This document shows, piece after piece, positions 5,656 through 49,202 of a DNA stretch of 64,000 nt. A program made the translations under genes and the position numbers. The stretch covers positions 186,001-250,000 of the forward strand of contig NW_021832602.1 in the NCBI RefSeq assembly GCF_006345805.1. The letters run 5' to 3'. Each line of letters starts with the position of its first letter. The stretch's first letter is position 1. The notes under the pieces were generated by a model, which was given only the letters and a program-made list of their open reading frames with translations, made no database searches and was not told the DNA's origin. The DNA comes from Octopus sinensis. Taxonomy: Eukaryota.

Positions 5656-5719
5656 TAATAATTAAAATAAGACGTTTAGTCAAAAAGATTGATGCCAACA
5701 AAACCTCCTAAATTTGATA

Positions 5720-11850: not shown

Positions 11851-11854
11851 GGTC

Positions 11855-17495: not shown

Positions 17496-18377
17496 TTATT
17501 CAAACTGGCCAGCAATGACCATAAACAGTACGCCAGCAAAAACAGCAATAATAAGACTCAGTGAATGCTTGAAAGAATCACTGGTCAATTGACCAAGCAT
17601 TCCCACACTGCCCATGTAAACAAATCCTCCAGCAGTAAAAGGAATGAGCTTTTCCCCAATTGACGAACTCAGATGTCCCACCATTAGAGATAATACTGTT
17701 CCTAAAACTGACCCTATTGCAGTTACTAGCTGGAGAAGGATTGCCTAGCCAATCTTCAAACAACTACTATACCTGCTTACGAGAACAATTAGAACTCAAA
17801 AGTAAAGCAAAGTCACCTATTTCATGAGGAATCTCGTGACAAAGAATAGCCAGGGATGTACTCACTCCCATTGAAGTACTGTGGAGGAAGGAGGAGCCAA
17901 TTGCCAGCCCGTCCGTTACGTTGTGAGCAAAATCGCCAACAAAGCTCAAATAGCCCTGGGGACTCATCTGCCCCTTTTTTGCTTTTTGGTGAACTTTGGA
18001 CTTTCGAGACCGTTTATGATTGATATCTTCTGCAGAGGAAGACTCGTGTTCTTTTTGGTGGGGACAAGAAGGTAGAAAAATATTTAGCATTTTTTCGAGG
18101 GTAAAAAAAGAGTAGAAGCCCAAAATAACAACCATGCCATAATGGGAATTTCCCCTTAGATAGGAATGCGGTAGGAGATGCATGAATGCGTCGGCTATTA
18201 AACTGCCAGAAGCAAAAGACAGCATAATCTAAAACATGTAAGATGACTGTTTTATACTTGGAGAGACTTTTTATGTCTTGGAGTATTGTCCACAGTAATA
18301 AAAAACAGGACAAGCGCAGGCAGTACGCCTATCAAAACACTTGCGAGTATGGCCTGCCAAAATGGATCACAAAACAT
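17496..18377 (-). CDS. LIV-1-type ZIP zinc transporter (SLC39A7/A13-like), about 274 aa, 2 introns (29 and 28 nt)
   Basis: [19 protein letters not shown]; [10 protein letters not shown]; [11 protein letters not shown]; [11 protein letters not shown]. Confidence 0.93.
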
Positions 18378-23149: not shown

Positions 23150-25926
23150 GGAATGTCTGGCTAAACTCAGCGGATCCATAAAGTTGAGACACACCGGTAA
23201 TCCAGAATCTGTCCCTCGATTGCTCAGTAACACTCCTGCATCTCTCACTTTCTGATGTTATGTGTTTTTTTTTCATTTTTAAAAATATTTTCACTGTGTT
23301 GTAGTTGTGAACTAAAAGTTATTGAAACATTTTTGGATCACCTTTAAATATTTTTTATGTAGTATTTTCGTTAAAATAAGCATGTTTGCTTCTCAAACGG
23401 AGCTAAAAACAGTTATTTTGTTTTTATTCGAGAATTAAAACAGGAAATTCAGATAGTTCCGTTTTCTACTGATAATCCCAATTTAACGTCTTAAGATTAA
23501 AATATAAAAATAAAATCATGCTTGATGTTTCACATTATGTCATATGGGCGACGCTTTTATACCCATAGAGAGCGTTTTACATTTTTGACCTTTAAAATGT
23601 CTTTTAATTATCGGACATTTTTAATGCTTTATTTTGCTTTTCCTGTATTCTTAAAATTTCCAAAACGTTATATTGAACATGGATTTTTAATCGGGTATTT
23701 AAACTTAAATTAAAAAGGTTTTTCTCGGTTTTCAAAGTGGGATTGACCAGAAGCATTTTATTTGTGGCATTTTTTTATTTTCGAGCAATAACTTAGAAAT
23801 CGAAAACAAAACAGAATTTTTCATAGAAAAGAATTCAATATTTGTTCATTGCTGCAAAAGATATTTTCTAGTTCTTTACTTGGAGCACCTTCTCTTTGAT
23901 TTCAATTTGCAAGCATTAAAAATTATATCTGCATATTTTTTCCTTAGTTCAATGGTAGTCACTCAATCGCAGAAGTTAGCTGACCTGAGCAGCAGGTTGA
24001 TTACTCAACACATTCTAGATGCGTGACAAATACCCAAAAAGTCTAAATTTGTATTTTTTTAATATTATTTGTGTTGGGAGGAGTTGGCTATTAGTTACGA
24101 CATGTTCTTTGAGGACTTTAATACTCAACAAAAAGAGAATGATATATTAATAATAAACTAATTCTATTAATAAAGTGATGTAGTAGATGAGTTTATAAGA
24201 GAGAGTGACGAAAAAACGAAATTAGAGACGAGTGAAGTAAATTTTAACAAGATGAGAACAACTTCCACCTTTGCTAGTGGATATAGACGTGTGTGTGAGT
24301 GATGTTGAAGTCCGTAAGAAGACGGCAAAGTCAAACTTAAACTATTTTTGCCCTGATGACACCGTAGAGAGGTCCCCCCTGTGCGCATTGCAAACATTAA
24401 AGCAATTACCACTCATCACTCCCAGTTTTAAAATTTATTAATCATATATTATTTATTAATAATACATGTACACAAACTACTGGTTATATATTACACTTGA
24501 TTCCGTAGGGGCTCCTGATTCGACTGATTGCCCACACAAGAACGCAGACCTGACCTACGAGTGATATTTCTCGGGCACGCCTACTAATCCTCAATTGATA
24601 GTTGTAATAGAATAAGCAATATAGCACAGTTAGCCACATATCCCAACATCAATGAAATATTCCTCCGCAATAATTAAATATCCGACCTTGCTCAAATTTG
24701 TCACCTAAGAGGACTCCCCAATCTCAAGAAGTTATATTCCCCTGCTTACTCAAGGCATCCCCTGTGACGAGGAAAGGCTATATCGGGTCAATGTGATACG
24801 TAATCTACTTTCCCTTGTTTGACTGGACGATATAAGTAATTCTCCACCACATTGAGAAATTGATCCATTGGTGATCAAGAATGAGGTCTTCGAGGAGCCG
24901 GTCATGGGGGAGACAAGAAGTAGCGAGGAGGTGATGGAGATAGTGCTACTTTTATTATTTTTACACACTCTCTGCAATATTTTCTGCGGAGACAGATTTC
25001 CCCTTATGAACTGAACATTTTGATAGATAAAATAAATAATCTGTGACTTTATTTATAATATACTAGCTCGGCAGCTCGCTTCGCTCACCGCGACCTAGCT
25101 CCTGCGGAGGGCCTGTTTCATCAAACAACTATAAGTTTATGTAGATGTATAAAACTACCTGGTTAATGTAACCCTATTCTATCGCCTGTTGATAAACGAT
25201 GTTGTCGTCCGTCCTTCCTGGCATATATGAATAAATTTTCTCTTCTGCCTACCCTCGAGCATCCCACATACAGCTGTCCATGTGAAAAGCACTCATTCTC
25301 TAAAAATAACCCAACTACCTTTAATGAGTGTCACTGGGCCTTGTTTATTGTCATTGCAAAACTCATCCTCAAGGAAATTGCAGCCTTTTAAATCTAAATG
25401 GTAATTCATCAGAAATTATCGGAATTCGTGGAATAATAAACATCCTCACCTCTATACTTACCTGTTAATATCGTCGCCTCTATTACGTTAGCCATTAAAT
25501 TTTTGATAACTAACCTCGTTCCGTTGCATAATTTAGGTGCGCAAGATTTCGTAATAAAACCACTGGCGGAAATGGGGCAGGCAGAGTAGCAGCAGCCAAA
25601 AAAGCGACACACAAAAAGATTTAATTAATTACCTTAAGGTGCCCGTTTTTCTTCAGCTTCGTTTTTCTTCCTTCGGTTATCTATTTAAAAAATTATTTTT
25701 GAATAATAAAAAATATTAGGAAAAAAGAGGCATACAGAAAATAAATTCTATCTTTACGAAAAACTTATTTTCTTAAGGTCGTCTTCCCTCCTTCGGTTAT
25801 CTATTGAAAAATTATTTTTGAATAATAAAAAAGTTTAGGAAAAGAGACATACCGAAAATAAATTCTATCTTTACGAAAAACTTAACTAAATAGTGAATTT
25901 TTACGCAAATTCTTCAGATTGCGCTG

Positions 25927-26236
25927 TCAATTGGTGGTAAATTGTGTTAATGATTGTCTTTTTTGCTAATGTGTTCAACTATCAAAGTGTTTTTCAAAAT
26001 CTGTTAATTGCACACTCTATTCAAGGTCGTGCGTCAATGGTGGTAAATTGTGTTAATGATTGTGCTAATGTGGTTTCAACTATCAAAGTGTTTTTCAAAA
26101 TCTGTTAATTGCACACTCTATTCAAGGTCGTGCGTCAATTGGTGGTAAATTGTGTTAATGATTGTGCTAATGTGGTTTCAACTATCAAAGTGGTTTTTCA
26201 AAATCTGTTAATTGCACACTCTATTCAAAGTCGTGC
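25927..26236. repeat. Three tandem copies of an about 103-bp segment
   Basis: ..TCAATTGGTGGTAAATTGTGTTAATGATTGT..GCACACTCTATTCAAGGTCGTGC repeated three times; single copy at about 4620-4725. Confidence 0.9.
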
Positions 26237-26444
26237 AATCTGTGATTGCACATTCTGTCAAGTCAAATTGATAATAGCTTTAATTTTGATTCATGGTCGA
26301 TAATGATATATGCATTTAATTTTAAAGATAAAAACATAGGATGAATTGAATTTCTTTATCGCGAATAATTGGGAGTTCATCATTGTTAATATTCTCGCTG
26401 TCTTTTTATCAAGGATATTCTTAATACGTGAGATTTTTGCCTGG

Positions 26445-27050
26445 AAGGTTTTAATGGACCTCATCATGAATGTCGAGGACATTCGCGTTGTTCATTTTAA
26501 CCAAAATGCAGAAATTTTTTTTTAATTTTTTTTAGGGGGAAGGTTTTATAGACTCATCATGTAAGTCGAGGACATCGTAGTTGTTCATTTTAACCAAAAT
26601 GCAGAAAATTTTTTTTTAATTTTTTTTGGAGGGAAGGTTTTAAGGACCTCATCATGTAAGTCGAGGACATCGTAGTTGTTCATTTTAACCAAAATGCAGA
26701 AAATTTTTTTTTAATTTTTTTGGGGGGAAGGTTTTAAGGACCTCATCATGTAAGTCGAGGACATCGTAGTTGTTCATTTTAACCAAAATGCAGAAAATTT
26801 TTTTTTAATTTTTTTGGGGGGAAGGTTTTAAGGACCTCATCATGTAAGTCGAGGATATCGTAGTTGTTCATTTTACAAAATGCAGAAAATTTTTTTTTAA
26901 TTTTTTTTGGGGGGGGAAGGTTTTAAGGACCTCATCATGTAAGTCGAGGACATCGTAGTTGTTCATTTTGACCAAAATGCAGAAAAATTTTTTTTAATTT
27001 TTTTTGGGGGGAAGGTTTTAAGGACCTCATCATGTAAGTCGAGGACATCG
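26445..27050 (-). repeat. Tandem array of about 95-bp units (6 full copies plus a partial) in Helitron copy 2
   Basis: Same unit as 3642-4420, reverse-complemented. Confidence 0.95.
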
Positions 27051-27069
27051 TATTGCCAATTTGAAGTTG

Positions 27070-29874: not shown

Positions 29875-30740
29875 TTAATTAGCAGCAGAGGATAAGATGG
29901 AATGGGAATTCCCACGCAAGATGGATATTGATATGCGTTGGAAAATCCATGTCCGTTCCCGATGATCATTTCTCTTTCTGCTTGCCAGGTCTCCCAGTTT
30001 AATAAGGAATTTTTTAGTTCTGGGACCGAGGACTCCCGATGTCTCCACTGCGATCGGGGCAAAGATATGGCGGTGAGATAATGCACTGTATTTCTTGATT
30101 TTTAGCGTTTCGGCCAGGTTAGCTGCGGAGCCCGGCTCTGCGGCTGACGTAAAGATGTTTCCGGCAGAGAAGGTGTCCGTGAAAGTTGCGTCCCAGATGA
30201 GCGACTTGCCATTTTCGAAGGGGAAAGTCGTTAGGCCGTCAGGACGTTTACCATCCTCCCAAACCAGACCGACCGGTTTCAACTGTGATGGGAATCCGGC
30301 AGTTTCGAGGGTCCGCTTGACTATGTTGTTCAGGGCAGTATGTCGGGGAAAGCGTCCGGAGCTTTTCTGGTACGATAATGGGTGCAATCCAAAGGTGTCA
30401 ACAGTCGATCCACAGCGGCATCAGTGTTCTTGGCATACGTTTAGTTCCAGGCGCAATGAGACGCCGATCCTCAGGCAATCGTCATTCAATAAGGTTCCAA
30501 TAGATCCCATAGAGATAGCGTTCAACCAAGCCCACCCAAGCGATGTTGGTTAAGCTTAGGCTTGAGGTTGTTCGACTTCTGATCACAGAGAATCCTGTCC
30601 CATTCGTCTTGTCCGTGTGTATTCTTCGGAAGCTCAAGAGACATCCCAAACCAGCGACTTTCTGCGGCGACTGATTCTGAGTCCATAGGAGAATCGGTAA
30701 CGGGTTGGAGAATTTAAACATATTGTCTGTGATCACCTTT
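29875..30740 (-). mobile_element. CRE retrotransposon 3' part with its natural C-terminus
   Basis: SGRFPRHTALN..DGKRPDGLT..WDATFTDT..AVETSGV..FQRISISILRGNSHSIL. Confidence 0.9.
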
Positions 30741-30764: not shown

Positions 30765-31085
30765 TGGGGACAAATGCGTTTACGAGGAAAACCGTGTTTG
30801 GTTTCGTGGCTGGATTAGCCGGCTTCAGAGGGAGATTCGAAGGGAAATCCGCGAACTCGAAAGTTCACGGTGGAAGCGAGCCTGCAGACGCGTAGACGCC
30901 CGCTTCCCGGACTTTTGGAAACAGATGAAGAGCCTGTCGAGGAGAGGGGAAGCAAATTCAGTGCGCCTTAAACGCTCTAAAGGAACCCTCGTCTCAGACC
31001 CGGTTGAGGTGGCTGAAATATTTTCAACCCATCTCAATACCAACTCTGGAACTAACGAAAGTAGGTTCGTCAAGGCATCGTCCTT
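30765..31085 (+). mobile_element. Fragment of the same LINE family as 11-1605
   Basis: Near-identical to about 920-1222 (GGGACAAATGCGTTTACGAGGAAAACC..GGTTGAGGTGGCTGAAATATTTTC). Confidence 0.9.
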
Positions 31086-33285
31086 TGTTTAATGTTACTG
31101 TCAACTTTCTATTTATTGCCAACAAGGGGACCGACCAAAATAGTGGTAAAAACGAGATTTAAAGCTTGAATGTCATTTTATCATGTTTTTTTAATTAGCT
31201 TGCTATTTTTTGTTTCCAACCGGTTTATTAGTCAAAATAAAGAAAATAAGTTTTTATTTGAGAACATTTTTAGGAAAGCCACTTAAATAATTTATTAATG
31301 TTTTTTTATTTTTCTCCGTTTCTTGTTTAGTATGTTTTCGATAGTTTTATGTAACTAACAATAAATCGAAAAATGTTCGATTCTAACAAAAAATGTTTTG
31401 AAATTTCACTTGAAGGACTTGATTATACCTGCGTATAAATTTTTAATAAATTAATTAAGCACTTAACTAAATTAATTAATAAACATTAATAAAAAATTTT
31501 AATAAGCCTGAAAAAGTGGTAAAAAATAGAAGAATGTTAAAAATAGAAAAACATAAGAAAAAAACAGAATTTCATTTTTTCGATAAAAGGGAGAGAGCAA
31601 ATCATAGAGGTGGTAAATTAGAGAGGTTTGCGTGTATTTTATTTGCCGTTTTGCTCAAAGCTGGGACGCCTAGTATTTTGTGAAGATTAAAAAGAGTAAA
31701 TGAGTTTATCACGCCATGAGAAACCCGAATTTCATATTTTTTGTAATATATTAACTTTCTAAGTTTAATTTATTTTATTGTTTTCAAAATTAATTTACTA
31801 GCATAATGGTAGAGGAGCAATTGTGTACTGATTGTAAAAGAATATATTTATTCATAATTTTTGTCAAAATAATTAGTCAGATAACATTGAAGATTTATTA
31901 TAAATAGAACGATCCGAGATAATCGGAATATTCGAATGGTTAAAAACTTATTTTAATAATTACAGGGTAACATTTGCGGGAAAGGAAATTGCTCAAATAA
32001 TTGTTTGAATTCATCTTATGATTCGGGAGACAGTTTTATATTCTTATACAGAAAAAAATCAACTTTTTTTGAAAGACGTTGGTCAAAAACGAATTTCAGT
32101 ATCAGTAGAAATTATTTCAAAGGGTATAGCATAAAATATTCACTACTTTTAGAAATATGTATATTAATAACTTTAAATACATCAGATTGCTGGAGCGGGG
32201 GAACTTCGGAGATGTATGAAATACATACAATAATAATTTATTTAGGTATCTTTGCATAAATACAAAAAAGATGGGAAATTATATGCCATCAAGGAAGAAG
32301 AGCGGGAAAAACACCGAATTACAATGAATGAGGCTAGAAGAAACGAAATTTATGTTTTTTCTCTAGCAACAAAGTTACAAAACAAATTTTTGTCCCATCT
32401 TCATTCACATTTTTACTCAAAGGTTCTAATATATTAAAAAAACTTCAGTATTTTTCATTCATTGTCTTTGAATATCTTGAATTTGGAAACTTAGAATCTA
32501 TGATATCTACAATGACATTCCAATTGTCAAAATTCTACGCTGTTTGTATTTTGCTTGGTCTCGAGTTTCTCCACGAGCATAATATTATGCATAGGCATGT
32601 CAGTTTTTATAATTTAGCAGAGACTTAACACTGGAAAACATTTCTGTGGGATCAGACGGGTACGCTAAAATTGCTAACTTTGAAAATGTCAAACCAAAAA
32701 TGAAAATGAATTCAAAAATTAAAGAAATTGTGGGAATTGTTGACTATTTCGCTCCAGAAGTTGCTAGAAAAGAAGAATATACCAGAACAATTGATCATTG
32801 GATGTTTGGGGTCTGTCTGTTCCGAATGTTATTTAAAAGAGTTTTCAATTTTACCTTTTATTTTGTAGTTTCCATTTTTTGGTCAAAACTACAATGCTGT
32901 TATAAAAGCAATACTTAATAAAGAACCTGATTATTTTTTCCTCGAACTCCACTTTTCCGAAATAATGAATTGTGAAACAATAGATATTTTGAAAAAAGTG
33001 ATATCAATTTTATATTCTAGTTGTTTGCCAAAAATCCGAAAAAACGTCTTGGTAGTTCGCAAAACGGAATTGGTGACATCATCATCCATCCCTTTTTTAA
33101 GGTACCCACATTAGCCAAGACAAGTTTCATTATAGATGATGGACATAAAAGCTATCCGTACAAAAACCATCTTAATGATTCCGGGAATACAACAACCACA
33201 CGGGAGTAAACGTTCACTATCCGGGACTCTTTAAAATTAGTTTAACATTTATTTTTTGGCATTTTTAATTTTATTTATCTTTTTT
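31086..33285 (+). repeat. Inverted segmental duplication, copy A
   Basis: Aligns over about 2.2 kb with 46894-49385 on the minus strand. Confidence 0.95.
31936..33209 (+). CDS. PKN/AGC-like predicted pseudokinase, copy A (360 aa, 7 introns)
   Basis: M|GNICGKG; ERGNFGDV; YAIK; HR|DLTLEN; ANFEN in place of DFG; FAPE; YTRTIDHW; KRLGSS..HPFF. The spliced length is 1083 nt, in frame. Confidence 0.88.
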
Positions 33286-34049: not shown

Positions 34050-37000
34050 TTAAAACTTAGATCTATGCTTTTTGGTTTTTAATTTAGTATTCAATGTTCT
34101 GATACAGAACTTTAAATCCAAAGTTACTCGGTTAGATTTCTTGAGATAATTTTTTTCTTTGACCAAGGCAGATCTCCTTTGATCACTAATTCTTTGACCA
34201 GCTACTTTAGAATTATTCTCGTAAAGTAGCTCATGGTCTTGTCCAAAGACCTGAAGCTATCCAGACAACAATTTTTTAGTTTAGATTTCTTGGAACAATG
34301 GCCAGTTTGCAGAATTTAATTTTATCCAGCAAGAACTCTCTTGGTGTTGATTTCCCTTTTGATCCCCACAACGATCGGATTGTGGTAGCTTCTTGTTTTG
34401 TAAAGGACTGACCAATCAGTAATAGATGAAAGAAATTAAGAGCAAAATGTTACATCGGTGACGTAAGCAAATTAGTCACGCTGATGAGAGTCCTTGAGTT
34501 TCTCGATGAATTATTCATTATTGGTAAAGAGTCCATTTGAGATAGTAAAAGATTCTTTCTTGTATCTGTTGACTGAGTTTACAGCCATAAGGGTGCTTTG
34601 CATTCAAGTCCCCGCATATGATGACTTCTATTTAAAGAAATTTGGCAACCTATCGCTCCTCTGACAGGAGCCGGAGGGTGAAATGTTGATTGTAGGAAAG
34701 AAAGTCAAGCGGAAAAAACGTCAAGTGGAAAAAAAGTCAAGTCCGTAAGCGGAAAAAAAGTCAAGTGGAAAAAAAGTCAAGTCGTCTTTGTTTACTTTAT
34801 ATTGTATCTTTTTCGCAATAATAGCAACTTTTAATTTTTAACAATTTTTTTCAATACTTGACTTTTTTTCCGCTTTACTTTTTTTCCATTTTTGAAATTT
34901 TCCCTTATAAATTTTCGAAATTTAGCGCAAAACGGAAAAAAAGTCAAGTCCGTAATTTCGTTAACGAACTTGACTTATTTTCCGTCTTAAAATAATCGCT
35001 TTTCCTAAATCAATTTAAGAACTTCAAAGTAATAATAAAAGTGGCCTGACTTATTTGCTTAATCTTACGCCTTGATCTTAAATATTATGCATATTGTATC
35101 TTAAATATATGGATGCCGCAAAAATAAGTGACAAAATGGAGATAATATCATCTAACAAAGGAGGAAAAAAAAATTGTTTCAAAGGTTATATGTATACAAG
35201 GCACTCGACAACAAAAAATTATATAATTTTAATTGTGTTAAAAAGTCTTCGCAAGGATGCAGAGGAAGCTTAAGAACAGATCATAACTTTGAGTTTCCTA
35301 AAGAAGGAACCTCTCACAATCACGAATTAGACGAAACTCAAATAAAACTGACGAAGTTGTGCAACAAGGCAAAACTTCTTGCAAAAAAGAGCCAAGAGAA
35401 TCCCTTACAAATCTATTCAAATGTTGTTTCTCAATGTGATACATCATCCAGATTATTCTCCCTTCTGCAGATTCTTTCAAGCGAACAATAAGAAATCAAC
35501 GCTTGTCTCTACATATTCCAAAAAATATTCTAGATCTAGAAGATATTCCATCATTTTTAACTTCAACTCTTGGTCCGGATTCAGAAAACTTTTTAATTTA
35601 TGATAATCAAAGAAGAAACGATAGACTTTTAATATTCAGCACCAATACTAATTTAACGTTATTGGCAAATTCCAAAGTATGGTATATGGATGGAAATTTC
35701 TCTATGGCACCATGCATATTCAAGCAAATATATTTTATCAGAATTGAGTTCAATTCCAGTCCAATTACAGTTATTTATGGAATATTACCTTCTAAATCAA
35801 GAAAGATTTACGAAGAATTTTTTGAGACTATTCAAAATGCAATTCATAATTTGAATTTGGAATTTTGTCTTGAAACTATTATGGCAGACTTTGAAGATTC
35901 GGTATTTCGAGCTGTCCTTGCAGTATTTGGGAGACGAATACATATTAGAGGATGTTATTATCATCTAAGGCAGTCAACCTGGAGAAAAATTCAAGAATTG
36001 CATTTAGTAAAAGAATATAAAGAAAATATTAACTTCAACATTTTTTGCGCTATGATAGACGCTCTTGCGTTTTTGCCCATTCAAGATCTGGAAGAAGGAA
36101 TAGAATTCCTAATAGATAATATACCAAAAGATGTTCCAGATTCAAAATATATAGTAGATTATTTTGATCGAACATATGTTCGTGGTTATTATCGTTGCTT
36201 AAATAAACAAGAAAACCCTTTATCTGTTAGAATACAGCACATTTCTCCATTGTTCCCTCCAATTTTATGGAATGTGTATGAAGCCATTGTGAAGGATGGA
36301 ACAATAAATTATACAATTTGACGGGATATCGTCATCCATCGATATGGAATATTATATCTTCTTTTCAAAAAGAAGAAAATGACGAAAACAATTATTGACC
36401 AGGATTCCATCGGAAGAAAAATTACGACAAGAAAAAACAAGAGTACACTCGATCGACAACAAAGGCTGCTAAATATATGTCTGGATCGCCAAAACAGAAA
36501 AAAGACAATAGGAGAAACCCTACAAGCAATTGCATGGAATATTAAATATTCTTTTGATTCGAATTAAATAATCCTTTCATCACGTTTAATAAAATCTTTT
36601 TTAAATATTTAAAAATTTTTAAAAATAAAGAAAATCTGGACTACTCTAAGAATTTTTGTAAAATTTATGTGATTTATTTTCCGGAAGAAATGAAACAGAA
36701 TAGATAAAACAAAGGAAGCGAACTATTTCGGCAGGCGAGAAGCTAACGCGAACGAAAAAAAGTTTGCGCATACAATTGCAAGTGATATCAGTTTTAAAAA
36801 ACCGATATTCTGAACCAAGCTTTTAAAATTTATTTTCACAACGTGTTGCTTAGCTGTGGCAGAACATTTAAATGAAATTACAGTCCGTAATTTCGTTAAC
36901 GAACTTGACTTTTTTTCCGTTTTGCGCTAAATTTCGAAAATTATAAGGGAATAAATTTCAAAAATGGAAAAAAAGTAAAGCGGAAAAAAAGTCAAGTATT

Positions 37001-37500
37001 GAAAAAATTTGTTAAAAATTAAAAGTTGCTATTATTGCGAAAAAGATACAATATAAAGTAAACAAAGACGACTTGACTTTTTTTCCACTTGACTTTTTTT
37101 CCGCTTACGGACTTGACTTTTTTTCCACTTGACGTTTTTTCCGCTTGACTTTCTTTCCGCATACCGAAATGTTATATTGAGCAGCCATTGTCTTTCCTTC
37201 ATCTTACCAAACGAGATCCCAATTATTTCGGGAACCTCATCAGCTCAGATAAGATTCCTAACTTTCAAGGTGATGTCTGTCTCTGATTAAAGTGAGCAAC
37301 CACCGTCTCCTTTCGCTTTGCGGTTCATCCTGATAGCATTGTAACCGGAGAATGAGGGCGTAGGATTATTAGGAGATAGTTTGGTCTCTTGTATCTACTT
37401 TGCTTTTTAGGTTTGTCAGATGTGAGCGCGAGTCTTTGGTTTTCCCTTTAATCCCATTAATGTTTAACTGGAGAGCAGTAAAGTGTTTGGTTGTTGTAAA
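34050..37500 (-). mobile_element. Degenerate I/Jockey-group LINE endonuclease region split by the MULE
   Basis: LQLNINGIK (about 37480) and IICGDLNAKHP (about 34600). Removing the MULE and one TSD restores YNISPSGSC. Confidence 0.8.
34688..37165 (+). mobile_element. Complete MULE (Mutator-like) element with about 250-bp TIRs and a FLYWCH plus MULE transposase (frameshifted)
   Basis: Long TIRs built of GAAAAAAAGTCAAG repeats; GAAATGTT flanks at 34680-34687 and 37166-37173; WYMDGNF, MADFE and GCYYH motifs. Confidence 0.93.
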
Positions 37501-38203: not shown

Positions 38204-39166
38204 TTATTGACTAAGAAAGAGTCGTTTCTTGGCAGTGTTCATATACGGTCTGAGTACCCACTCGACCTGAGAAGACTGGGTGGTCTCCAATGTACCCAAT
38301 ATCAGTTTATACACTACTAATCAAGCCAAAAACAACTCACATTTCATTTCAAACCTCGGACCAATTTCAGTCAAATCAATGGACTTGGTTTCACGATTCT
38401 TTTTGAATAAATGATGTCTACAAAAAAATATCAAACCTACCGGAAAGACAGGACATCACCAGTGTTAGAAAAAGTCACCAGTCGCTTGGAACTGTCTTTT
38501 GGGACGGGAAACAAATATTTGAGGATGGACATAACTCGTCTGCCAAGAGCGCTTGTCATGTTGTGGAATATCAAATGAGGAAATGCTTGACTCATCGGGG
38601 CAAGTGGAGACTCCTTCGAAATGTCGTGACGGAGAACGGCGTGGGAGAGAGTGAAATAAGCAGTCGGGCCAAACGGGAGGTGACAGACGACCAATCCATC
38701 AGGGTTCCCACGTGTTTCATTAAGGACTATCACATCCGTTATATCATTGGCACGTGCGGCGTTCATCAGTTCGGTCTCTTGGCAATTTCCGCGATTAATT
38801 CGCTGAGAATTGGGGATCAGCAAGTGCATTTCCTGAGCAAACTGACGTAGACGAGAACTTGGATCACGCGATGTCGTTATTATTATCTTTGGGTCATTTA
38901 CCCCTGCCCAACGATACTCATCGTCGCAGTGATTCACGACACCGTCTGCCCCCTTGTCGTCCCAACCCAATTTCTTGTGGATGTTTAATGCTTCTTGGCG
39001 GAGTTCGGGTGGCACAAAATCTCCTGTTTCCAGTACATTTCGAATCTTTCTTTTCTTTTCCTCGATTTGTTGATCTCGTTGTTCAATGGATTTTCTATAT
39101 ATATACTCGCGTCGTAATCGTGCTTGTCTTCTCAGCTAACAATAGATTATTAGTACAACACACCAT
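38204..39166 (-). CDS. IMP4: U3 snoRNP protein IMP4 (about 294 aa, 3 introns)
   Basis: M|LRRQARLRREYIYRKS; DDEYRWAG..DPKIIITTSRDPSSRL; EIGPRFEMK; PYMNTAKKR. Confidence 0.96.
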
Positions 39167-39307
39167 TCACACCACGATCTGCTTTTATAATTTATTTTAT
39201 AAATTAATTAACAAAAAACAATTTTTCACTATAATTATTCACCTTCTTTTTCAAATATATATGGCGTCTTAAAGTCATGCGTCTCTAAAACCTTTCGCTG
39301 CTTTTAT

Positions 39308-39429
39308 GGCCGACATAGACCAGCATTTTAACCCTTTTTTAAAATTGCAAAAAATTGATCAAGTGCCACTCTTTGTCTGTATTGATCTATGATTGATTGC
39401 TTTTCTCAATTGGCCTCTCTTTTCTAATT
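39308..39429 (+). repeat. Direct repeat, left copy, abutting the LINE (TAA)n tail
   Basis: GGCCGACAT..AAGTGCCACTCTTTGTCTGTATTGAT..TTTCTAATT; matches 41716-41827. Confidence 0.85.
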
Positions 39430-41715
39430 ATTATTATTCAACCAAGACCACCATCTAAAAACCCAAAATCCAGGCGCGGTTAAAAGTGGCAACATTTAGT
39501 TGTTCGTTTGGTTCTTCTAAGGTTTTGCAGATTCTTGATTTAATTTTTGAAATTTTTTCCCGATTGGCGTAGCTGATCCTATTTCCTCACGCTTTGCAAG
39601 CGTAGCTAATTGTATGTTTCATGTACTCCTATAGGCGGTTTGGCAAAAGGAAAAACTCTGAGTATGTAGAGTTCCTTCATAAATCTCGTGATCACATCAT
39701 TCACATGCTGCAAGAAAAACATATGAGTGTCGTATGTTACTTCCAAAATATTTTTTCAATTTTTGGAATGGTGTCTCCACATCGTTTAAACACAGCTTTA
39801 CTTGCGCTTTCCCGAATCTCTTTGCTGAGGTAAGGAGGGTCTCTTTGCTAGATTTGTTGGTAGTCGTTTATACTAGTAACCACGCTTCAAGACCGTAGAA
39901 ATAGTTTTGCAGTCATTGCGATTTCTCAGTCGCGAGATGCAACCACAATATCATCCGCATATGATAGAACAATTACATCTTTAGCTTTTGGCATCGGGAG
40001 ATCCGATAAGTATAATTTGAAATAGGCTGATGATAAAGGCAAACCTTTAGGTACTCCATATGGAAAAATACTTCAAGCTTGAATTTGTACTTTCCGTATA
40101 AATTTATTCCCTTTGCCCAGTAAGGAAGCAACCTATCCACTTTTTTAGGAATGAGGAGATATTGCAGAGAAATATTTTCCTAGTCAGTATTTTCCTAGAC
40201 ACGAAGTCAAAAACCTTGTGAATATCCACCGAGCACATAATCATCTTGTCGCTGTAGGGTTTAATTGTTAGTCCTTTCGAGATAAAGTTAGTCAGCGTGG
40301 CAAGATGCAAGGCCGTCGACTTCCCACTTTTAAATCCATGTTGAAAATTTAGGTCAGGAAGGAAATGTTTGATTCGGTTAAGTACATGCTTTTCCAGAGC
40401 TTTAGATAACACGCAGAGGAGGGAGATTGATGTGTATGATGCTGGGTTGTATTTAGGCTTTCCCGGTTTCAGGATAGGGGAAATGTGGGCCATTTTGCAT
40501 ATGGTAGGTATTTAATTGTTAATCAAGAAGTTATAGATTTTAACCATGGCTGCTATTGCTAGTTACTCAAAGTTTTTTAACAGAATTGTAGAAATTCCGT
40601 CAGGTCCACAAGATCCCGTTTTTCTTAGATTTTTGATAGTCTGAAACACTTTTTCGTGATTAAAGATTATTATATCGCGAGTTTCCGAAGTTTAAGGGAC
40701 TTCAAAAATAGTCCATTGTATTTCCTGTGAGGAATATGACTGATTCCGGCATAAAATTTTATTAATTTGTTGGCAATCGAAATCTAGAAGGGAATTTTTC
40801 TAGAAGGGAATTCTAGAAGGGAATTTTCTTACGGTTTTTGACCCGATTTTCCTCTTTTTATGAACAGCTTTTAACCAATCAGGATTATCTAATTGAAGTG
40901 TTTAGCAGCATTATCAATTGAGTCGTAATCATGTACATCAAAAGTTATCAGTACTTTATCAATGTAGCGGGTAAAGTTAACCCAATCGGCATGGTTGTAA
41001 TCGTATTTAAAAATGGGAGGTGTTTTTCTGAAAAGGGATTTGACTTATATAACTATCGGGTTATGATCGCTCTGTAAGTCGTAGATTACGTTCAAATTAG
41101 TCAATGACACCAGGTTAGCGGAGCAAAGAGTCAGGTCGGGCGAAGTAAGTTTGTCCTTTCTGTTGTGTGGGGTTCTTGTGTTGAAAGAAGGATTGTTGAG
41201 AATGACTAGGTTGTCAAGTTGCTCAAGCAGCGACTTTCTACGCAAGTCAGCTTTTTTAGACTTAAGCCACTGTGTGTGCTTTGCGTTCAGGTCACCGCAA
41301 ACAAGAAAGTTTTAAAGTTTATCAACCAGGAGAAGATCTGGGGTAAAACTTTTCGGGCATAATCCCATTGGCGGAATGTACATATTGCAAATAAGTAAAT
41401 TTCCAACAGGAGTAGATATAGTAATTGCAGAAGCCTCCAAGCATCTATTTTGATTTAGTTTAGAGTTAATGAATGCGAAACTCTCCTGGTAGTAAATACC
41501 CTTTTTAATAAGTGTCATGAGACCGCCTCCGCGGACAAATTATCTGTGGGGACCTCGAGGACATGGTGAGTTTTTTTCAGGATTACACAAACATAAATTT
41601 CGTGTTTGGTCGAAAAGGAGTTTAATTCAGTTACCTTCCTGGTAATCCTATTAATGTTCAGTTGAATTAAAAAAAAACTTAATTGTGAGCAAAATAAAAA
41701 TAAATTAAACAAATC
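39430..41715 (-). mobile_element. Degenerate, internally deleted I/Jockey-group LINE (endonuclease plus RT) with (TAA)n tail
   Basis: IQLNIN, NMYIPP, CGDLNAKH, LQSDHNP, SISLLCVLSKALEK, QHGF, GVPKG and SYADD motifs. Tail TGAATAATAATAAT at about 39430. Confidence 0.88.
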
Positions 41716-41827
41716 GGCCGACATTGACCAGCATTTTAACGCTTTTATTCAAAATTGCAAAAAATTAGTAAGTGCCACTCTTTGTCTGTATTGATGGCTT
41801 TTCTCTATTGGCCTGTTTTTTCTAATT
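41716..41827 (+). repeat. Direct repeat, right copy, abutting the LINE 5' end
   Basis: Matches 39308-39429 with scattered mismatches and a 10-bp indel. Confidence 0.85.
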
Positions 41828-41953
41828 CGATGTTTTTTGTAATTAAAAAATTAGATTTAACTGGTCAGGGGTTTCAATACTGGGTTGAATATCCCACCAT
41901 CAGCCAATTTGTATATGTTAATTAAAAAAATAATTTAGCAAAATAATAATAAA

Positions 41954-42389
41954 TTAAACAAATCGGTGAGCAATAGACATAATTTTGGCATATTGGGGTC
42001 CCATTGAACGCAAGGCAGATGGAATTGGGACTGTAATTCTTGTGCCCAGAGGGTTTCCATTGGCATCAACCAACACAACGTTATTCGAGTCAAATCGGGG
42101 AATGAAAGATTTTTGGGACTTTCTCATCCCAACTACGTACGCATGTCTAACCAATCCGGCTACTGCCACAGTTATTCGGTCACCAATGTCAGCCTGGGGC
42201 TTTCTCCCGCGGTTTCCTATCATCCGTGGGTGTCTGTTCTTCACTTTGGCCTGCTTTCCAAGGTCACTGTTGTCCACCACTCGTACTTTGGTCATATTTC
42301 GGAATAGCACAGGCAGAGAGGTTCTATTTTGATTAGTCACTGAATATTAACCCTAGAAATCTTCGAGGTTGTACAAAATGACCCCACAT
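41954..42389 (-). CDS. MRPL14: Mitochondrial ribosomal protein L14 (about 135 aa, one 28-nt intron)
   Basis: VRVVDNS; PRFDSNNVVLVDANGNPLGTRITVPIP (animal mito-L14 type); short putative presequence MWGHFVQPRRFLG. Confidence 0.92.
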
Positions 42390-43230: not shown

Positions 43231-43387
43231 AAGGCGACTGGCGAATCGTGATTTTCTAAATTAGCAGATAAATTTAATTACTCGTTTTTCTACGAATACT
43301 TAAAAATTGATATGATCTAACCACAAAATTAGTTAGCATCGAATGGCTAATTAAGAACAGTGGACATATTAGTAATAGTTAAACATG

Positions 43388-46210
43388 CTAAGAAGCCTCA
43401 TTGAGAAAAGACGCGAAGGAGAACGGTTCAAAGCGGACGCCATCTCCTTTAAAGAACTTTGATTGGAACTCCACCCTAACAGTCCCCACGACATAACAAA
43501 CCAGTGAAGTCGAACTGCGTGTAGAAAAGCAGAGAGTCCCTCCATAAGTAGAAGAATGCCAATAGTAAGACAAGCAAAGGGGACAAAGACAATAAAAAGG
43601 GCAATGGCGCCAGTGTGTGAGGACTGCTGTAGTCCAATCCTGAGAATCATAGACCACAACACCTCGGAGAGTTCTAAAATGAGAAATAAAGCAAACCAGC
43701 GTGTGCAAGACTGAGGGCCCACAATCGAAGATATGAGGCAGTGTGTGATATTGTGTTGAGAGTGAACTCGATGGTATGGATGGCTTGGTTGATCATCAAG
43801 TCAGAGAACTCAACCTACCGTAGAATACAAATACAACCTTCGTCTCTGGTTGGTCAATTTGAATGAGAGACTCTGAGAGAGACCCTGCCTTCTTGTTTTG
43901 CCTCCTGATTGTGAGTGGTTTGCCGAGGAGGAGACATGGGATGGATATGAACATGACCAACAGGAGGAACGTTTGGAATGATTGCTGGACTGGGGATGTA
44001 GGCAAACCTGTCCTGAATAGAAGACCAGTGATGAACAAGGCACAGAAGCACTGTCGGTGTCATATCTCATCATTGCCATGTTGATCAGGTCTGCAGAATT
44101 AAGACACAAACCAACGAGTGAGCAGACTGGGGGCACAGTGGGCAGTCGTGGCGTCGTAGGCCAACCATTTATACACCACGAGTGCCACCAAATACACCAA
44201 CAGACTCCCAAAGAACATAATCATGGGCAAAAATTCGACCACAATCATAATCTTCTCCTGGAATCGTCTACCAGTCACACTCACTCAATACATGTGGTTG
44301 ACAATTTGTAGCAATATTCCAAACAACATGTGGAACACTGCAATCACGATCGACAACTTCATTTTGTAGGAATTGGAAAATGTCATCGAGTTGGACGAGA
44401 GTGACCAAATAGGGTCAATTCCGTAAAAGTAGGGATGCCCTGAAAAGTCGGAAGTGTAGTTGGATTGAGGCAGTTGCCGCCGAGGCTCCAACCACGTGAG
44501 TTTGGAGTAATTGGCATAGTTTTGAGGAAGGATGTTATGACCCGAGGCAGACCACGAACTTTGGAAAATATTGAAGGACTTGGAGAAGGCATCATTATAC
44601 ACCAGTCCAGCGTGGATAGAAAAGAGTCCCATCAGCAGAATGACATATCTCCCCCCAAATAGCATTGTCCATATCCAAATAAGACCATCAGCAAACCTCA
44701 TCCTTTATTTTACTCTTGGCAAGTTTCTTCTCATTAAGCACAAGTATTGCAGCAAATATAAACATGATTAGTCCGTGGCCAAAATCCCCGAACATGACCC
44801 CGAAAAGGAAAGGGAATGTGACCACCGTGAAGAGTGCTGGACTCATCAACACGGAATACCCGGGTTTACTTCCAGGTAGGTCGAGATCCCATAGGCGTCG
44901 ACTATGCTTTGGAATGCCGATGTGTATTTATTGGTGGGATTCCACGTAGGCGCTTTCAGGTTGGTTTCCACACGGGTCAGAATTGAGGGGGCAGAACTCC
45001 CCGAACGCAACTACAACTCAGCTAGGAGGACAACTGAGGCTTCCACAAGAATACTCTCCACTTTGGGAATGTCCTCCACTGCACACCAACACTCCCCCAC
45101 GAGGAATCCTTTGCTCACATTGTCACTCAGGTGGTTGAGAATGTAGTACACGGCCTTCACTCTCCGCACGTGTGTCAACCACTCGTCCAATCGTCCACAG
45201 GCCAATTGCAGTAATTGAATTCGGTGGTTTTCTCCCTCTTTAATTATCTTTTTTAAATAATTAGTTAATTCGGTAATAAAATTAATTAATAATATACTAT
45301 ATTTAATTCGAGTAGTCTTGTGGTGATACTTTTGAGTTGGGAAACATGTTCTTGTGGGTCAGATGGCATAGAATACACCGTAGCCCTCATTCTAGGCCAT
45401 CAAACAAATGTAATACGCCTCACAAATAGCCTTTATTCGCTCCTGCAGATGCTCTCCTCTGTAAATTACTATAAAAACTAATTTCGGAATCGAATCCCCC
45501 TACAAATAAAGAGAAAGCACCCACAGTGACTGGATCAATCAATTTCTCAGTAATTTCCCGCGTCTTGAGGATGACATTACCACGGAAAGCCCTCCACAGC
45601 AGTCGATGAAGCACGGACACCCGATCTCTACCCACAACCCCGGAAAGTGTGGATATCATGTCTCCATACCCCTCTCCCTCGTCCACATTCCACATTAAAT
45701 AATCAATAAACTTCCAAATAAAATTCCCGCGTTTTTATAAGGACTTGATTGATTTCCGTCAATTCGACCATGTTTTTTTTGAGGGTTTCCGTGCTGGTGT
45801 TGACTCGTTTTAATTCTGTGTAGAGTCTTTGTGCCTCGGCCTGGAATGACACGTGACTGTCACCTCCATCTCCACCAAACAGTCAGCGTCGAGGACCGAA
45901 CTCAAATCGTCCTGAGTCTCGAGGATTTCAATCCCTGCAGCCTGTGCGTTCTTCTCAATATATTCTGATGGTGTAGTGAATAATATTACTTAGTTTTTGT
46001 TCTATTTCGTCTGCTCTTTTTAGTTCTCCTACGTATTTCTTGTCGAGGACATTCCTGTCTACTTGCATCTGGAAATAGATCACATGAGAGTACATCTCTT
46101 ATCTCCACGATACCCTCCTGTCCTAGTTTGGACACGATTCGGTAGGCTGCCTCTGTTTGTAGGAATAACTGGCATAATGCCATTTCCTTGCTTCTCAGCA
46201 TTTCCACCAT
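43388..46210 (-). CDS. ATP6V0A: V-ATPase V0 subunit a (about 800 aa, 16 introns)
   Basis: [12 protein letters not shown]; FQSIVDAYG; [16 protein letters not shown]; NSYKMKLS; [16 protein letters not shown] with the essential Arg; RLHWVEF. The spliced total is in frame. Confidence 0.96.
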
Positions 46211-46969
46211 CTGGTAACCACAAAATACTTTTTTTTATTTATTTTTAATTAATTTAAATTAAGTTTTAATCAGTATTAAGTTAAAATTTTTTTCAATTAT
46301 AATTTATATAAATTATAATCACTTTTCCTCATTTTCCACAGCGCTTAACCGAGGAAAATGGAGGAGACTCGTTACTAACATTGTTTTGGGTGTTGCACAG
46401 GTGAGACTATTTCGGAAGAATTAGAAACGACCCCTGTGAGCTCAATCGGCTCTTTGAACTTGTCTCAATAGCCGTTCTTAAACGAATAACCAAAAAGTCC
46501 GCCCTCTTCTTTATATCAATCAATAATGCCACGTTTGGGTGCATTTAACCTTGTTTGACTGTTTGCTTAAAAATATAAACTGTTTATTGGTCAGGTCGGT
46601 CATGAACAGTGGAACTGACTTGATCGACTCAGTTTTTACATTTATCTTGAACAGTTGGAAAAGATAATTTTCACGTATCTCTAGAATCGCTAAATAAATT
46701 TTATTTAATTTTCGACTTAATTTTATAAAAAATGTAAGAAGTAAAAGAAAACCGGCGAGAAAATATCCAATTATTGTTTTTAATTACACTCTGGTGTTTA
46801 AAAATAATACTGAAATCATAATCACTAAAATCGTGAAATATGTGTCAGCAACATATATTTCAAAAAAAACAAACTATTGATAACTACGCTTTGAAAAAAG
46901 ATAAATAAAATCAAAAATGCCAAAAAATAAATGTTAAACTAATTTTAAAGAGTCCCGGATAGTGAACGT

Positions 46970-48242
46970 TTACTCCCGTGTGGTTGTTGTATTCCCGGAA
47001 TCATTAAGATGGTTTTTGTACGGATAGCTTTTATGTCCATCATCTATAATGAAACTTGTCCTGGCTAATGTGGGTACCTTAAAAAAGGGATGGATAATGA
47101 TGTCACCGATTCCGTTTTGCGAACTACCAAGACGCTTTTTCGGATTTTTGACAAACAACTAGAATATAAAATTGACATCACTTTTTTCAGAATATCTATT
47201 GTTTCACAATTCATTATTTCGGAAAAGTGAAGTTCGAGTAAAAAATAATCAGGTTCTTTATTAAGTATTGCTTTTATAACAGCATTGTAGTTTTGACCAA
47301 AAAATGGAAACTACAAAATAAAAGGTAAAATTAAAAACTCTTTTAAATAACATTCGGAACAGACAGACCCCAAACATCCAATGATCAATTGTTCTGGTAT
47401 ATTCTTCTTGTCTAGCAACTTCTGGAGCGAAATAGTCCACAATTCCCACAATTTCTTTAATTTTTGAATTCATTTTCATGTTTGTTTTGACATTTTCAAA
47501 GTTAGCAATTTTAGCGTACCCGTCTGATCCCACAGAAATGTTTTCCAGTGTTAAGTCTCTGCTAAATTATAAAAACTGACATGCCTGTGCATAATATTAT
47601 GCTCGTGGAGAAACTCGAGACCCAGCAAAATACAAACAGCGTAGAATTTTGACAATTGGAATGTCACTGTGGATATCATAGATTCTAAGTTTCCAAATTC
47701 AAGATATTCAACGATAATGACCGAAAAATTCTGAAGTTTTTTAATATATTGGAACCTTTGAGTAAAAATGTGAATGAAGATGGGACAAAAACTTGTTTTG
47801 TGACTTTTTTGCTAGAGAAAAAACATAAATTTCGTTTCTTCTAGCCTCATTCATTGTAATTTTGTGTTTTTCCCGCTCTTCTTCCTTGATGGCATATAAT
47901 TTCCCATCTTTTTTGTGTTTATGCAAAGATACCTAAATAAATTATTATTGTATGTATTTCATACATCTCCGAAGTTTCCCCGTTCCAGCAATCTGATGTA
48001 TTTAAAGTTATTAATATACATATTTCTAAAAGTAGTGAATATTTTATGCTATACTCTTTGAAATAATTTCTACTGATACTGAAATTCGTTTTTGACCAAC
48101 GTCTTTCAAAAAAAGTTGATTTTTTTCTGTTTAAGAATATAAAACTGTCTCCCGAATCATAAGATGAATTCAAACAATTATTTGAGCAATTTCCTTTCCC
48201 GCAAATGTTACCCTGTAATTATTAAAATAAGTTTTTAACCAT
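46970..48242 (-). CDS. PKN/AGC-like predicted pseudokinase, copy B
   Basis: Same exon-intron structure as copy A, open frame, same HRDLTLEN and NFE motifs, and roughly 15-20 amino-acid differences by my manual alignment. Confidence 0.88.
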
Positions 48243-48996
48243 TCGAATATTCCAATTATCTCGGATCGTCCTATTTATAACAAATCTTCAATGTTATCTG
48301 ACTAATTATTTTGACAAAAATTATTAATAAATATATTCTATTACAATCAGTACACAATTGCTCCTCTACCATTATGCTAGTAAATTAATTTTGAAAACAA
48401 TAAAATAAATTAAACTTAGAAAGTTAATATATTACAAAAAATGTGAAATTCGGGTTTCTCATGGCGTGATACACTCATTTACTCTTTTTAATCTTCACAA
48501 AATACTAGGCGTCCCAGCTTTGAGCAAAACGGCAAATAAAATACACGCAAACCTCTCTAATTTACCATTTCTATGATTTGCTCTCTCCCTTTTATCGAAA
48601 AAATGAAATTCTGTTTTTTTCTTATGTTTTTCTATTTTTAACATTTTTCTATTTCTTACTACTTTTTTTCAGGCTTATTTTAATTTTTTATTAATGTTTA
48701 TTAATTAATTTAATTAATTGCTTAATTAATTTATTAAAAATTGGACGCAGGTATAATCAAGTGCTTCAAATAGTATTTAAATACATTTTTTGTTATAATC
48801 GAACTTTTTTCAAATGATTGCTTAGTTATTTTTTTAATAAGATTTTCTTTAGAAAAATCAAACACTGGGATTTTTTCAGAATGTCTAAAACATATGACCG
48901 GTACTGTACTATCGAAAACATCAAACAAGGAATTGAGAAAAAAACATTATTAATTTATTTAACTGTCTTTCCTAAGAATGTTCTCAAATAAAACTT

Positions 48997-49202
48997 GCTC
49001 ATCTCAAGAAACTTTGGCGCCTGTGCACCTACCGCTCTAGAGATCCGAGGGAATTTATATTCCTTATTCAGAGGATCTCGCTGGCTGTTTTACGCGGGAA
49101 TTGTCTTTCAATCCTGCGAGCCAGTTCATAATAGCTAGATTTTTTTTGACGATTTCACATTAACAATTAAATGGTTGTTTTATTTAAATAATTAACAATT
49201 AC
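48997..49202 (+). mobile_element. 5'-truncated CRE insertion with an about 10-bp TSD
   Basis: Encodes ..RDPREFIFLIQRISLAVLRGNCLSIL*. Flanked by AATAAAACTT and AATAAAAACTT. Absent from copy A. Confidence 0.85.

Follow-up and report, generated by a model that had tools for sequence, protein, structure and literature searches.

The stretch of DNA analysed here, referred to throughout as the window, comprises 64,000 nucleotides (nt) filed under Octopus sinensis (NCBI RefSeq assembly GCF_006345805.1, contig NW_021832602.1, positions 186,001 to 250,000 of the forward strand); it contains a pair of genes, copy A and copy B, each predicted to encode a compact protein kinase of the AGC group that is unlikely to catalyse phosphotransfer. 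Comparing the window with itself by blastn, we see that the two genes occupy the arms of the single inverted duplication found in this region, the copies being convergent and the arms matching over 1937 nt at 96.4% identity (Table 1); 13.6 kb of unique sequence separates them. The match is not uniform, identity being 87% in the first 150 nt at the outer edge and 94–99% from position 31500 onwards, the part that covers both promoter and gene. Two functional paralogues, generated by a local inverted duplication, provide the best explanation for this arrangement. Weaker similarity continues beyond the 1.94-kb arms and overlaps a dispersed repeat, one section of which (48991-49163) is also present on three other scaffolds at 87–95% identity; given this overlap, a repeat element may have mediated the kinase duplication, or the duplication may have inserted beside it.

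An explicit splice model was written for copy A and its exon boundaries moved to copy B through the alignment of the arms. Both copies splice to an open frame of 346 amino acids (aa), assembled from nine exons and eight introns, with products that are 95% identical; open spliced frames in both copies had been claimed by an earlier annotation made from the letters of this DNA alone (the ‘sequence-only reading’), and our model bears this out. The introns measure, in order, 27, 62, 32, 26, 26, 28, 23 and 34 nt (seven GT-AG and one GC-AG), all 16 splice dinucleotides are conserved between the copies, and the product of copy A aligns to both PKN2 and PKN1 without gaps at the exon junctions. The GC-AG intron, intron 5, splits the codons of the HRD motif (CAT AG|A GAC) and is identical in the two copies; its GC donor alone keeps the frame and restores HRDL, the nearby GT donors being rejected because a stop is then reached within 20 codons. 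Divergence across the introns as a set is 1.6%, with four of the eight identical between copies, compared with ~6.6% at synonymous sites and 5.1% in the upstream flank; this low figure points either to gene conversion or to introns this short being strongly constrained.

At the 3′ end, the frame is backed by homology to the C-lobe and tail of PKN: the kinase segment starting HPFFK|, at an exon junction, aligns with PKN HPFFRLIDWSALMDK. The TAA that closes this frame lies 25 nt beyond the 3′ ends previously assigned to the two genes (33209 and 46970), which we find to coincide with an out-of-frame TAA. At the 5′ end, the first coding exon consists of the ATG alone and, together with the 27-nt intron that follows, is identical in sequence between the copies; splicing yields M-G-N-I-C-G. 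An in-frame TAA two codons upstream keeps exon 2 from starting any earlier, no in-frame Met then occurs until residue 90 (already past the beta3 Lys), and the ATG-only exon is the sole start candidate with an intron of typical length, the alternatives requiring introns of 103–533 nt. For these reasons, and because the arrangement is conserved in both copies, we take the MGNICG start to be the best gene model. A TATA-like string, TATAAATAG, starts 37 nt upstream of the ATG, with 28 nt between its last base and the ATG; it is conserved in copy B, and we infer that it could act as a core promoter; such strings are, however, frequent in AT-rich DNA.

A control for these tiny introns lies 7 kb away, in the gene for IMP4. 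Here too the first exon is an ATG alone, followed in this case by a 28-nt intron, a long exon, and two further introns of 23 and 24 nt. The spliced product of 295 aa aligns end to end with the IMP4 of a nemertean and a brachiopod, to which its N-terminus, MLRRQARLRREYIYRK, is identical. As the structure of IMP4 is thereby verified by homology, the short introns and 3-nt first exon of the kinase gene become credible; for genes of this scaffold, there is nothing unusual in introns of ~25 nt or in a first coding exon made up of the ATG alone. The model annotated by NCBI as ‘IMP4-like’ (280 aa) is a chimera, taking its N-terminus from the open reading frame (ORF) of mitochondrial uL14 and the remainder from the large IMP4 exon; it ends where the unrecognised first 23-nt intron begins.

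Table 1. Window positions of the kinase duplication, its genes and motifs, and of other features; for features present once, positions stand in the first position column.
Feature	Copy A or single position	Strand	Copy B or partner position	Strand	Remarks
Duplication arm (A; B)	31352-33285	+	48828-46894	-	Arm A: promoter region, gene and 51 nt of 3′ flank; arm B: self-blastn partner
Weaker similarity beyond arms	31086-31345		48908-49385; 48991-49163		Overlaps dispersed repeat
Kinase gene, start to stop codon	31936-33234	+	46945-48242	-	346 aa; A: splice model, PKN alignment, Pfam; B: boundaries mapped from copy A
TATA-like string	31899-31907	+	48271-48279	-
ATG-only exon 1 and intron 1	31936-31965	+	48213-48242	-	Copy A: exon 31936-31938, intron 31939-31965
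Exon 1	31936-31938	+	48242-48240	-
Exon 2	31966-32123	+	48212-48055	-
Exon 3	32186-32213	+	47992-47965	-
Exon 4	32246-32422	+	47932-47756	-
Exon 5	32449-32594	+	47730-47585	-
Exon 6	32621-32840	+	47558-47339	-
Exon 7	32869-32997	+	47310-47182	-
Exon 8	33021-33101	+	47158-47078	-
Exon 9, including stop	33136-33234	+	47043-46945	-
Intron 5	32595-32620	+	47584-47559	-	GC-AG
Span of introns	31939-33135	+	47044-48239	-
Stop codon	33232-33234	+	46945-46947	-	TAA
Gly loop ERGNFG	32193-32210	+	47985-47968	-	Followed by Asp63
Beta5 strand and hinge	32449-32475	+	47730-47704	-	A: YFSFIVFEY; B: NFSVIIVEY
Catalytic loop HRDLTLEN	32590-32639	+	47589-47540	-	Split by intron 5
NFE in place of DFG	32676-32684	+	47503-47495	-
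Glu206	32724-32726	+	47455-47453	-	Phospho-Thr position
Truncated C-terminal tail	33090-33231	+	47089-46948	-	Residues 311-346
IMP4, ATG	39166-39164	-
IMP4, intron 1	39163-39136	-			28 nt; long exon follows
IMP4, intron 2	38440-38418	-			23 nt; exon follows
IMP4, intron 3	38340-38317	-			24 nt; last exon follows
NCBI ‘IMP4-like’ model	38207-42295	-			Chimera
Mitochondrial uL14	41954-42340	-			In NCBI annotation only within the chimeric model
V-ATPase subunit a	43369-44701	-			Several exon-sized ORFs, gaps <90 nt; uncalled by NCBI
NGP1/GNL2 N-terminal domain	51053-51472	+			Uncalled by NCBI
ZIP zinc transporter	17767-18225	-
Pif1/Helitron-type helicase fragment	5043-5408	+
MULE-type DNA transposon	34695-37158				2.46 kb
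MULE terminal inverted repeats	34695-34900		36953-37158		206 nt
MULE transposase ORF	35503-36321				272 aa
Second inverted duplication	3642-5670		25049-27064		~2 kb
HPLS-motif ORFs	9315-10148; 11624-12079; 29875-30387	-
Non-LTR retrotransposon	55890-58906	-
Its endonuclease ORF	58101-58859	-
Its reverse-transcriptase ORF	56520-57346	-

Taking the kinase and IMP4 genes together, 11 introns (eight of them in the kinase) have a median length of 27 nt. Among animals, introns below 30 bp are documented only for dicyemids and myxobolid myxozoans (PMC13644364; also PMC6543705), and those of dicyemid genomes are mostly <30 nt, at ~6 per gene (PMC6736024, PMC6543705, PMC13644364). The dicyemid Dicyema japonicum inhabits the renal sacs of O. 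sinensis (PMC6854800), and its genome, of 36.7% guanine plus cytosine (GC), contains 49% repeats rich in ORF2 copies of long interspersed nuclear elements (LINEs; PMC6736024); the window has a GC content of 36.8% and many ORFs of LINE, MULE and Helitron type. An apparently intact LINE endonuclease ORF in the window finds its close relatives only on small unplaced scaffolds labelled ‘O. sinensis’ (36–652 kb), with none on the chromosome-scale scaffolds and none in other octopus species, and these unplaced scaffolds share repeats with the window at up to 99.4% identity. Across 28437-52295 the sequence matches part of VCDQ01012509.1, an unplaced scaffold of 294 kb in GCA_006345805.1, at 100% identity; within these 24 kb NCBI calls one gene, the chimera described above, and neither kinase copy is annotated. 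The IMP4 exon at 38437-39015 (- strand) is 99% identical to ‘IMP4-like [Octopus sinensis]’, its next match being nemertean at 64%, and the 90% cluster to which this IMP4 belongs has no cephalopod partner. On the combined strength of the tiny introns, the confined transposons and the faulty NCBI annotation, we consider that the window is very probably dicyemid DNA held within an octopus assembly; a parasite origin was no part of the sequence-only reading. A nematode or flatworm source, to which the short introns had seemed to point, was discarded in view of the 99% match to the O. sinensis record. The next-closest IMP4, of Logan accession SRR13325286, was tried as that of a second dicyemid and rejected, being from an ordinary invertebrate (60% identity, intron of ~58 nt).

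Turning to the kinase product, Pfam recognises Pkinase only (PF00069; E=6e-41, 141 bits against a cut-off of 31.7, profile positions 9–260 of 263). The best sequence matches in the PDB are PKN2 (1e-45) and PKN1 (2e-42), then PKC theta, other PKCs, PKA, Akt and RSK, with all of the best 60 belonging to the AGC group (PKN, PKC, PKA, Akt, RSK and GRK). AlphaFold, supplied with a 101-sequence alignment, returns a confident kinase fold with a predicted local distance difference test (pLDDT) of 83.9 and a predicted template modelling score (pTM) of 0.82, in which residues 1–41 and 334–346 are disordered; an earlier alignment of seven sequences gave a pLDDT of 60. Foldseek lists 4crs (PKN2) and 4otd (PKN1) as the best structural matches to this model, and its top 50 are again all AGC kinases. 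Identity to PKN1/PKN2 is ~31–35%, the lead of PKN over PKC theta amounts to only ~10–14 bits, and fungal Pkc1 and PKC relatives score equally in a large library, where the best relatives are HR1-bearing PKN, HR1+C1(+C2) fungal Pkc1 and C1-bearing PKC. A word-indexed homology search with the kinase was set aside, as it recovered just unrelated kinases at ~28% identity.

As judged from these comparisons, the product belongs to the PKN/PKC clade of AGC kinases. The term ‘PKN-like’, put forward in the sequence-only reading, is fair for the domain, which is closest to PKN1/PKN2 by sequence as well as by fold; PKN orthology is not established, and we do not claim it, since PKN outscores PKC theta by so little and the HR1 and C2 modules are absent. 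With regard to these modules, which had earlier been reported missing, tblastn with full-length PKN, Pkc1 and PKC queries finds no HR1, C2 or C1 exon in the 64-kb window, in agreement with the kinase-only Pfam result; the PKN and Pkc1 relatives carry HR1. Matches of PKN HR1 at 30814-31029 (E 3–8) were rejected as noise-level, this segment being a copy of LINE-related sequence at 918-1225. The opposite end of the protein is also shortened: there is no match to Pkinase_C (PF00433) in the kinase product, a domain present in nine of nine close relatives checked, and in alignment the product ends ~35 residues past the kinase core, its tail (residues 311–346) without the NFD, turn (TP) or hydrophobic (FxxF) motifs. 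As modelled, the product is little more than an AGC kinase domain behind a disordered leader of ~41–45 residues.

Working through the active site, with residue counts taken over the 99 nearest relatives, we see that both copies carry the same replacements at positions that are otherwise close to invariant. The first Gly of the Gly loop (Gly in 98/98 relatives) is Glu57 and the residue after the loop (Lys in 94/99) is Asp63; the Lys of the catalytic loop (99/99) is Thr174; the Asp and Gly of DFG (99/99 and 97/99, respectively) are Asn190 and Glu192; the activation-loop Thr/Ser that forms the PDK1 site (94/99) is Glu206; and the Thr of GT(P)E (96/99) is Ile210. Retained are Lys79 of beta3, Glu97 of alphaC, Arg171 and Asp172 of HRD, Asn177, the APE motif, Asp229 of alphaF and Arg296. 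The motifs quoted in the sequence-only reading (NFE, HRDLTLEN, ERGNFG, YAIK and APE) are all present in both copies, and its suggestion of catalytic impairment is supported by the lack of residues that phosphotransfer requires, at positions conserved in 97–99 of 99 relatives; the loss of the AGC tail and the replacement of the T-loop Thr by Glu are features it did not contain. Among the top 45 relatives found by blastp, DFG is canonical in all but one and RDxK in all. With the relatives canonical and both copies changed, the catalytic degeneration is specific to this gene and predates its duplication.

By its sequence definition, a pseudokinase has lost one or more of three residues, namely the Lys of beta3 and the Asp residues of HRD and DFG; here the DFG Asp is replaced by Asn. 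Canonical AGC kinases are crippled when they lose just one of the DFG Asp and the catalytic-loop Lys. We infer that the phosphate/metal site would have lost two key ligands and become more negative by about four charges (G57E, K63D, K174T, D190N and G192E); given such ligand loss and added negative charge, binding of Mg and adenosine triphosphate (ATP) is probably poor or nil, phosphotransfer unlikely, and the product best described as a putative pseudokinase.

The predicted N-terminus, MGNICGK, fits the PROSITE pattern PS00008 at Gly2 and is accompanied by Cys5, Cys10 and Cys14; in the AlphaFold model this acylation motif sits within the disordered leader of ~41 residues. It is predicted to have the layout of dually acylated, membrane-tethered proteins, and the MG-x-x-C start proposed earlier gains support from the best gene model, from the PROSITE myristoylation match and from the equivalent ATG-only exon of IMP4.

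The two coding sequences differ by 13.5 synonymous and 16.5 nonsynonymous changes, giving a synonymous rate (dS) of 0.069, a nonsynonymous rate (dN) of 0.020 and a dN/dS of 0.29 (p=0.0008 versus neutrality). No insertion or deletion (indel) is found in 1041 nt of exon, versus four in 891 nt of non-coding arm (probability of zero, ~0.009). This ratio, taken together with the lack of exon indels, shows purifying selection since the duplication, and both copies are selected genes; the sequence-only reading had named a ratio near 1 with disabling mutations as the sign of the contrary, and we see neither. Differences between the copies are densest at the start of exon 5, where five substitutions fall within 21 nt (permutation P ~0.04) and alter four residues of beta5, including the gatekeeper: Phe in copy A, Val in copy B and Met in 83 of 99 relatives. 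The clustering around the hinge described earlier (YFSFIVFEY versus NFSVIIVEY) is thus real, and could reflect either relaxed constraint or a diverging specificity of the pocket, two options that the data cannot separate.

Drawing these strands together, we lean, if modestly, towards a selected, catalytically dead dicyemid AGC pseudokinase that is constitutively tethered to the membrane and acts as a scaffold or competitor. After removal of the initiator Met, Gly2 would be N-myristoylated and Cys5 palmitoylated, perhaps with Cys10 and Cys14 in addition; the acyl anchor would then tether the domain to the membrane constitutively, replacing the Rho- and lipid-dependent recruitment of PKN through HR1/C2. 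Glu206 could pair with the HRD Arg as a mimic of phospho-Thr, holding the activation segment in an active-like form without PDK1. Once at the membrane, the protein might serve as a non-catalytic scaffold, or compete for the partners or substrates of PKN-type kinases.

Several points weigh against this interpretation. The start codon, upon which the anchor depends, comes from a splice model rather than a transcript, and a Gly at position 6 is allowed by N-myristoyltransferase without being optimal. Gene conversion between the inverted arms could distort dS and dN/dS. HMMER, run exhaustively over 1.84 billion representative proteins, returns no relative above ~39% identity, and no further paralogue is present in 125 kb taken from six loci on the scaffolds that share transposons with the window; of the putative ‘lineage-specific family’ suggested by the sequence-only reading, just these two copies are seen. 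With respect to a dicyemid origin, dicyemid and octopus cannot be told apart by GC content, and no dicyemid protein appears among the matches to IMP4 or the kinase in protein searches. Finally, residual or unusual activity is possible, since the catalytic Asp, the Lys of beta3, the Glu of alphaC and Asn177 remain in place and Asn can sometimes ligate metal.

This last point is the basis of the first rival, an atypical but active kinase, in which Asn190 would be a weak metal ligand, or the chemistry metal-independent in the manner of CASK, with Glu206, as a phosphomimetic, rendering the enzyme constitutively active at the membrane. The confident fold is in keeping with such an enzyme, as is the conservation of Asp172, Lys79, Glu97 and Asn177, and purifying selection fits it equally well; against it, four changes at positions invariant in 97–99 of 99 relatives line the phosphate/metal site and three of these add acidic side chains, leaving us to regard an active kinase as unlikely.

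A more specific form of the pseudokinase hypothesis concerns the pocket that receives the hydrophobic motif, the PDK1-interacting fragment (PIF) pocket. PDK1 is an AGC kinase that naturally has no hydrophobic motif of its own and whose free PIF pocket docks the motifs of other AGC kinases. The window protein resembles it in the lack of a hydrophobic motif, but PDK1 is an active enzyme with a PH domain. With that motif lost, the putative PIF pocket of the window protein would be empty, and a dicyemid-specific, constitutively membrane-tethered pseudokinase, locked in an active-like form by Glu206, might dock or decoy the hydrophobic motifs of PKN, PKC, S6K or Akt. Were it so, growth and cytoskeletal signalling would be rewired in an animal of ~30 cells, and the differences between the copies at the gatekeeper and beta5 would mark a divergence in pocket ligands; we give this version a slim chance.

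It is improbable, in our estimation, that there is a single real gene, with the second copy an artefact of long-read assembly in which, for example, two haplotypes or two co-infecting dicyemid strains have been joined head to head. The DNA was probably obtained from a mixed parasite population in host tissue and the arms differ by 3.6%, both of which would suit such an error, but the arms enclose 13.6 kb of unique sequence with intact housekeeping genes (IMP4, uL14m and V-ATPase a); fold-backs would give abutting, near-perfect palindromes, whereas here the arm edges are sharp and identity varies along the arms. Two decaying pseudogenes of a PKN-like gene stripped of its regulatory exons would account for the degenerate motifs, the truncated N- and C-termini, the transposon-rich setting, the want of an annotated relative and the one GC donor; this we hold to be most unlikely in the face of a dN/dS of 0.29 (p=0.0008), of 2 x 1041 nt with no frameshift, stop or lost splice site beside flanks that do have indels, of structural core residues that are all kept, and of a GC donor that predates the duplication and so was present throughout the period of visible selection. 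That the window is genuine octopus nuclear DNA, its kinase an octopus gene possibly acquired from a parasite, has in its favour the label on the record and a GC content similar in both organisms, and is made highly improbable by housekeeping genes with introns of 23–28 nt, by the IMP4 cluster without a cephalopod, by a LINE family missing from the chromosome-scale scaffolds and from other octopus species, and by the failure here of an octopus-trained annotation.

Having weighed these alternatives, we return to the membrane-tethered pseudokinase and set it beside known proteins. PKN1/PKN2 (the Rho-effector AGC kinases PRK1/2) share with it the signatures LHEH before the catalytic loop, GY.KIA, YTR..D.W and RLGSS, but have the HR1 and C2-like domains, the Pkinase_C tail and the canonical catalytic residues that it does not. 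The nearest parallel in working is PKBR1 of Dictyostelium, an Akt-like AGC kinase in which a myristoyl tether takes the place of the PH domain and confers constitutive residence at the membrane (PMC2930282); PKBR1, however, is active and is phosphorylated at its hydrophobic motif and activation-loop site by TORC2 and PDK (PMC2930282), both of which sites the window protein has lost, along with the catalytic residues. The pseudokinase PSKH2 likewise has a disordered leader with Gly2 and Cys sites, and its myristoylation, demonstrated experimentally, drives localisation to the membrane fraction (PMC9988210). PSKH2, whose active paralogue is PSKH1, differs in belonging to the CAMK group and in being degenerate only at the HRD Asp (HRN), with DFG kept (PMC7586955), so that homology is confined to the kinase fold. 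The Tribbles pseudokinases TRIB1-3 are scaffolds, not enzymes, with a Gly loop that starts with Glu (EREHVS, EGDHVF), an x-hydrophobic-Glu motif (SLE) in place of DFG and a Phe gatekeeper (PMC7586955); they belong to another kinase group, are not acylated, have a COP1-binding C-terminal tail and have lost the catalytic-loop Asn, and their likeness to the window protein is convergence, not homology.

Pseudokinases and acyl-anchored kinases are each well known; their predicted combination in a PKN/PKC-clade domain with loss of the AGC tail is new. If our interpretation is correct, a compact AGC domain has been turned into a pseudokinase in which a lipid anchor replaces the Rho- and lipid-sensing modules and a phosphomimetic replaces the input from PDK1, bringing together features that PKBR1, PSKH2 and Tribbles show one by one. 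Dicyemids, as animals of extreme reduction, would have in it a signalling gene that is under selection and restricted to their lineage; literature searches returned no study of a dicyemid kinase, and nothing on contamination of the O. sinensis assembly by dicyemids.

In practical terms, the apparent parasite scaffolds labelled as octopus could prove of greater consequence than the kinase. At least seven scaffolds, totalling ~1.9 Mb, carry this transposon set; at least six beyond that of the window share its LINE and satellite families (VCDQ01000828.1, 01011140.1, 01004651.1, 01010000.1, 01013315.1 and 01012770.1; 36–652 kb), and ORFs on the sharing scaffolds go under octopus protein names such as ‘craniofacial development protein 2-like’. 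An O. sinensis assembly annotated by RefSeq thus apparently holds parasite scaffolds, with genes that are unannotated or mis-annotated as octopus; such scaffolds can contaminate analyses of cephalopod gene families and of horizontal transfer, and also supply long-read dicyemid sequence.

The remainder of the window is rich in repeats and contains further gene fragments (Table 1); Rfam identifies no RNA family within it. Between the kinase copies lies a MULE-type DNA transposon that looks recently active, its perfect terminal inverted repeats flanking an open ORF with a MULE transposase domain. A second inverted duplication has arms of 92–97% identity, some 21 kb apart, each comprising an array of a 94–95-nt satellite (8.1 and 6.5 copies) together with tandem repeats of 101–120 nt; the satellite is also found on VCDQ01012770.1. 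A repeated family of three ORFs shares the motif HPLS..(R/K)S(A/S)GR.P.H..LN(D/N), has no match in Pfam and presumably belongs to a transposable element that is as yet uncharacterised. Lastly, a near-intact retrotransposon of the type without long terminal repeats (non-LTR), with endonuclease and reverse-transcriptase ORFs, has copies at 99.4% identity on two further scaffolds, one of them VCDQ01012770.1, implying recent transposition.

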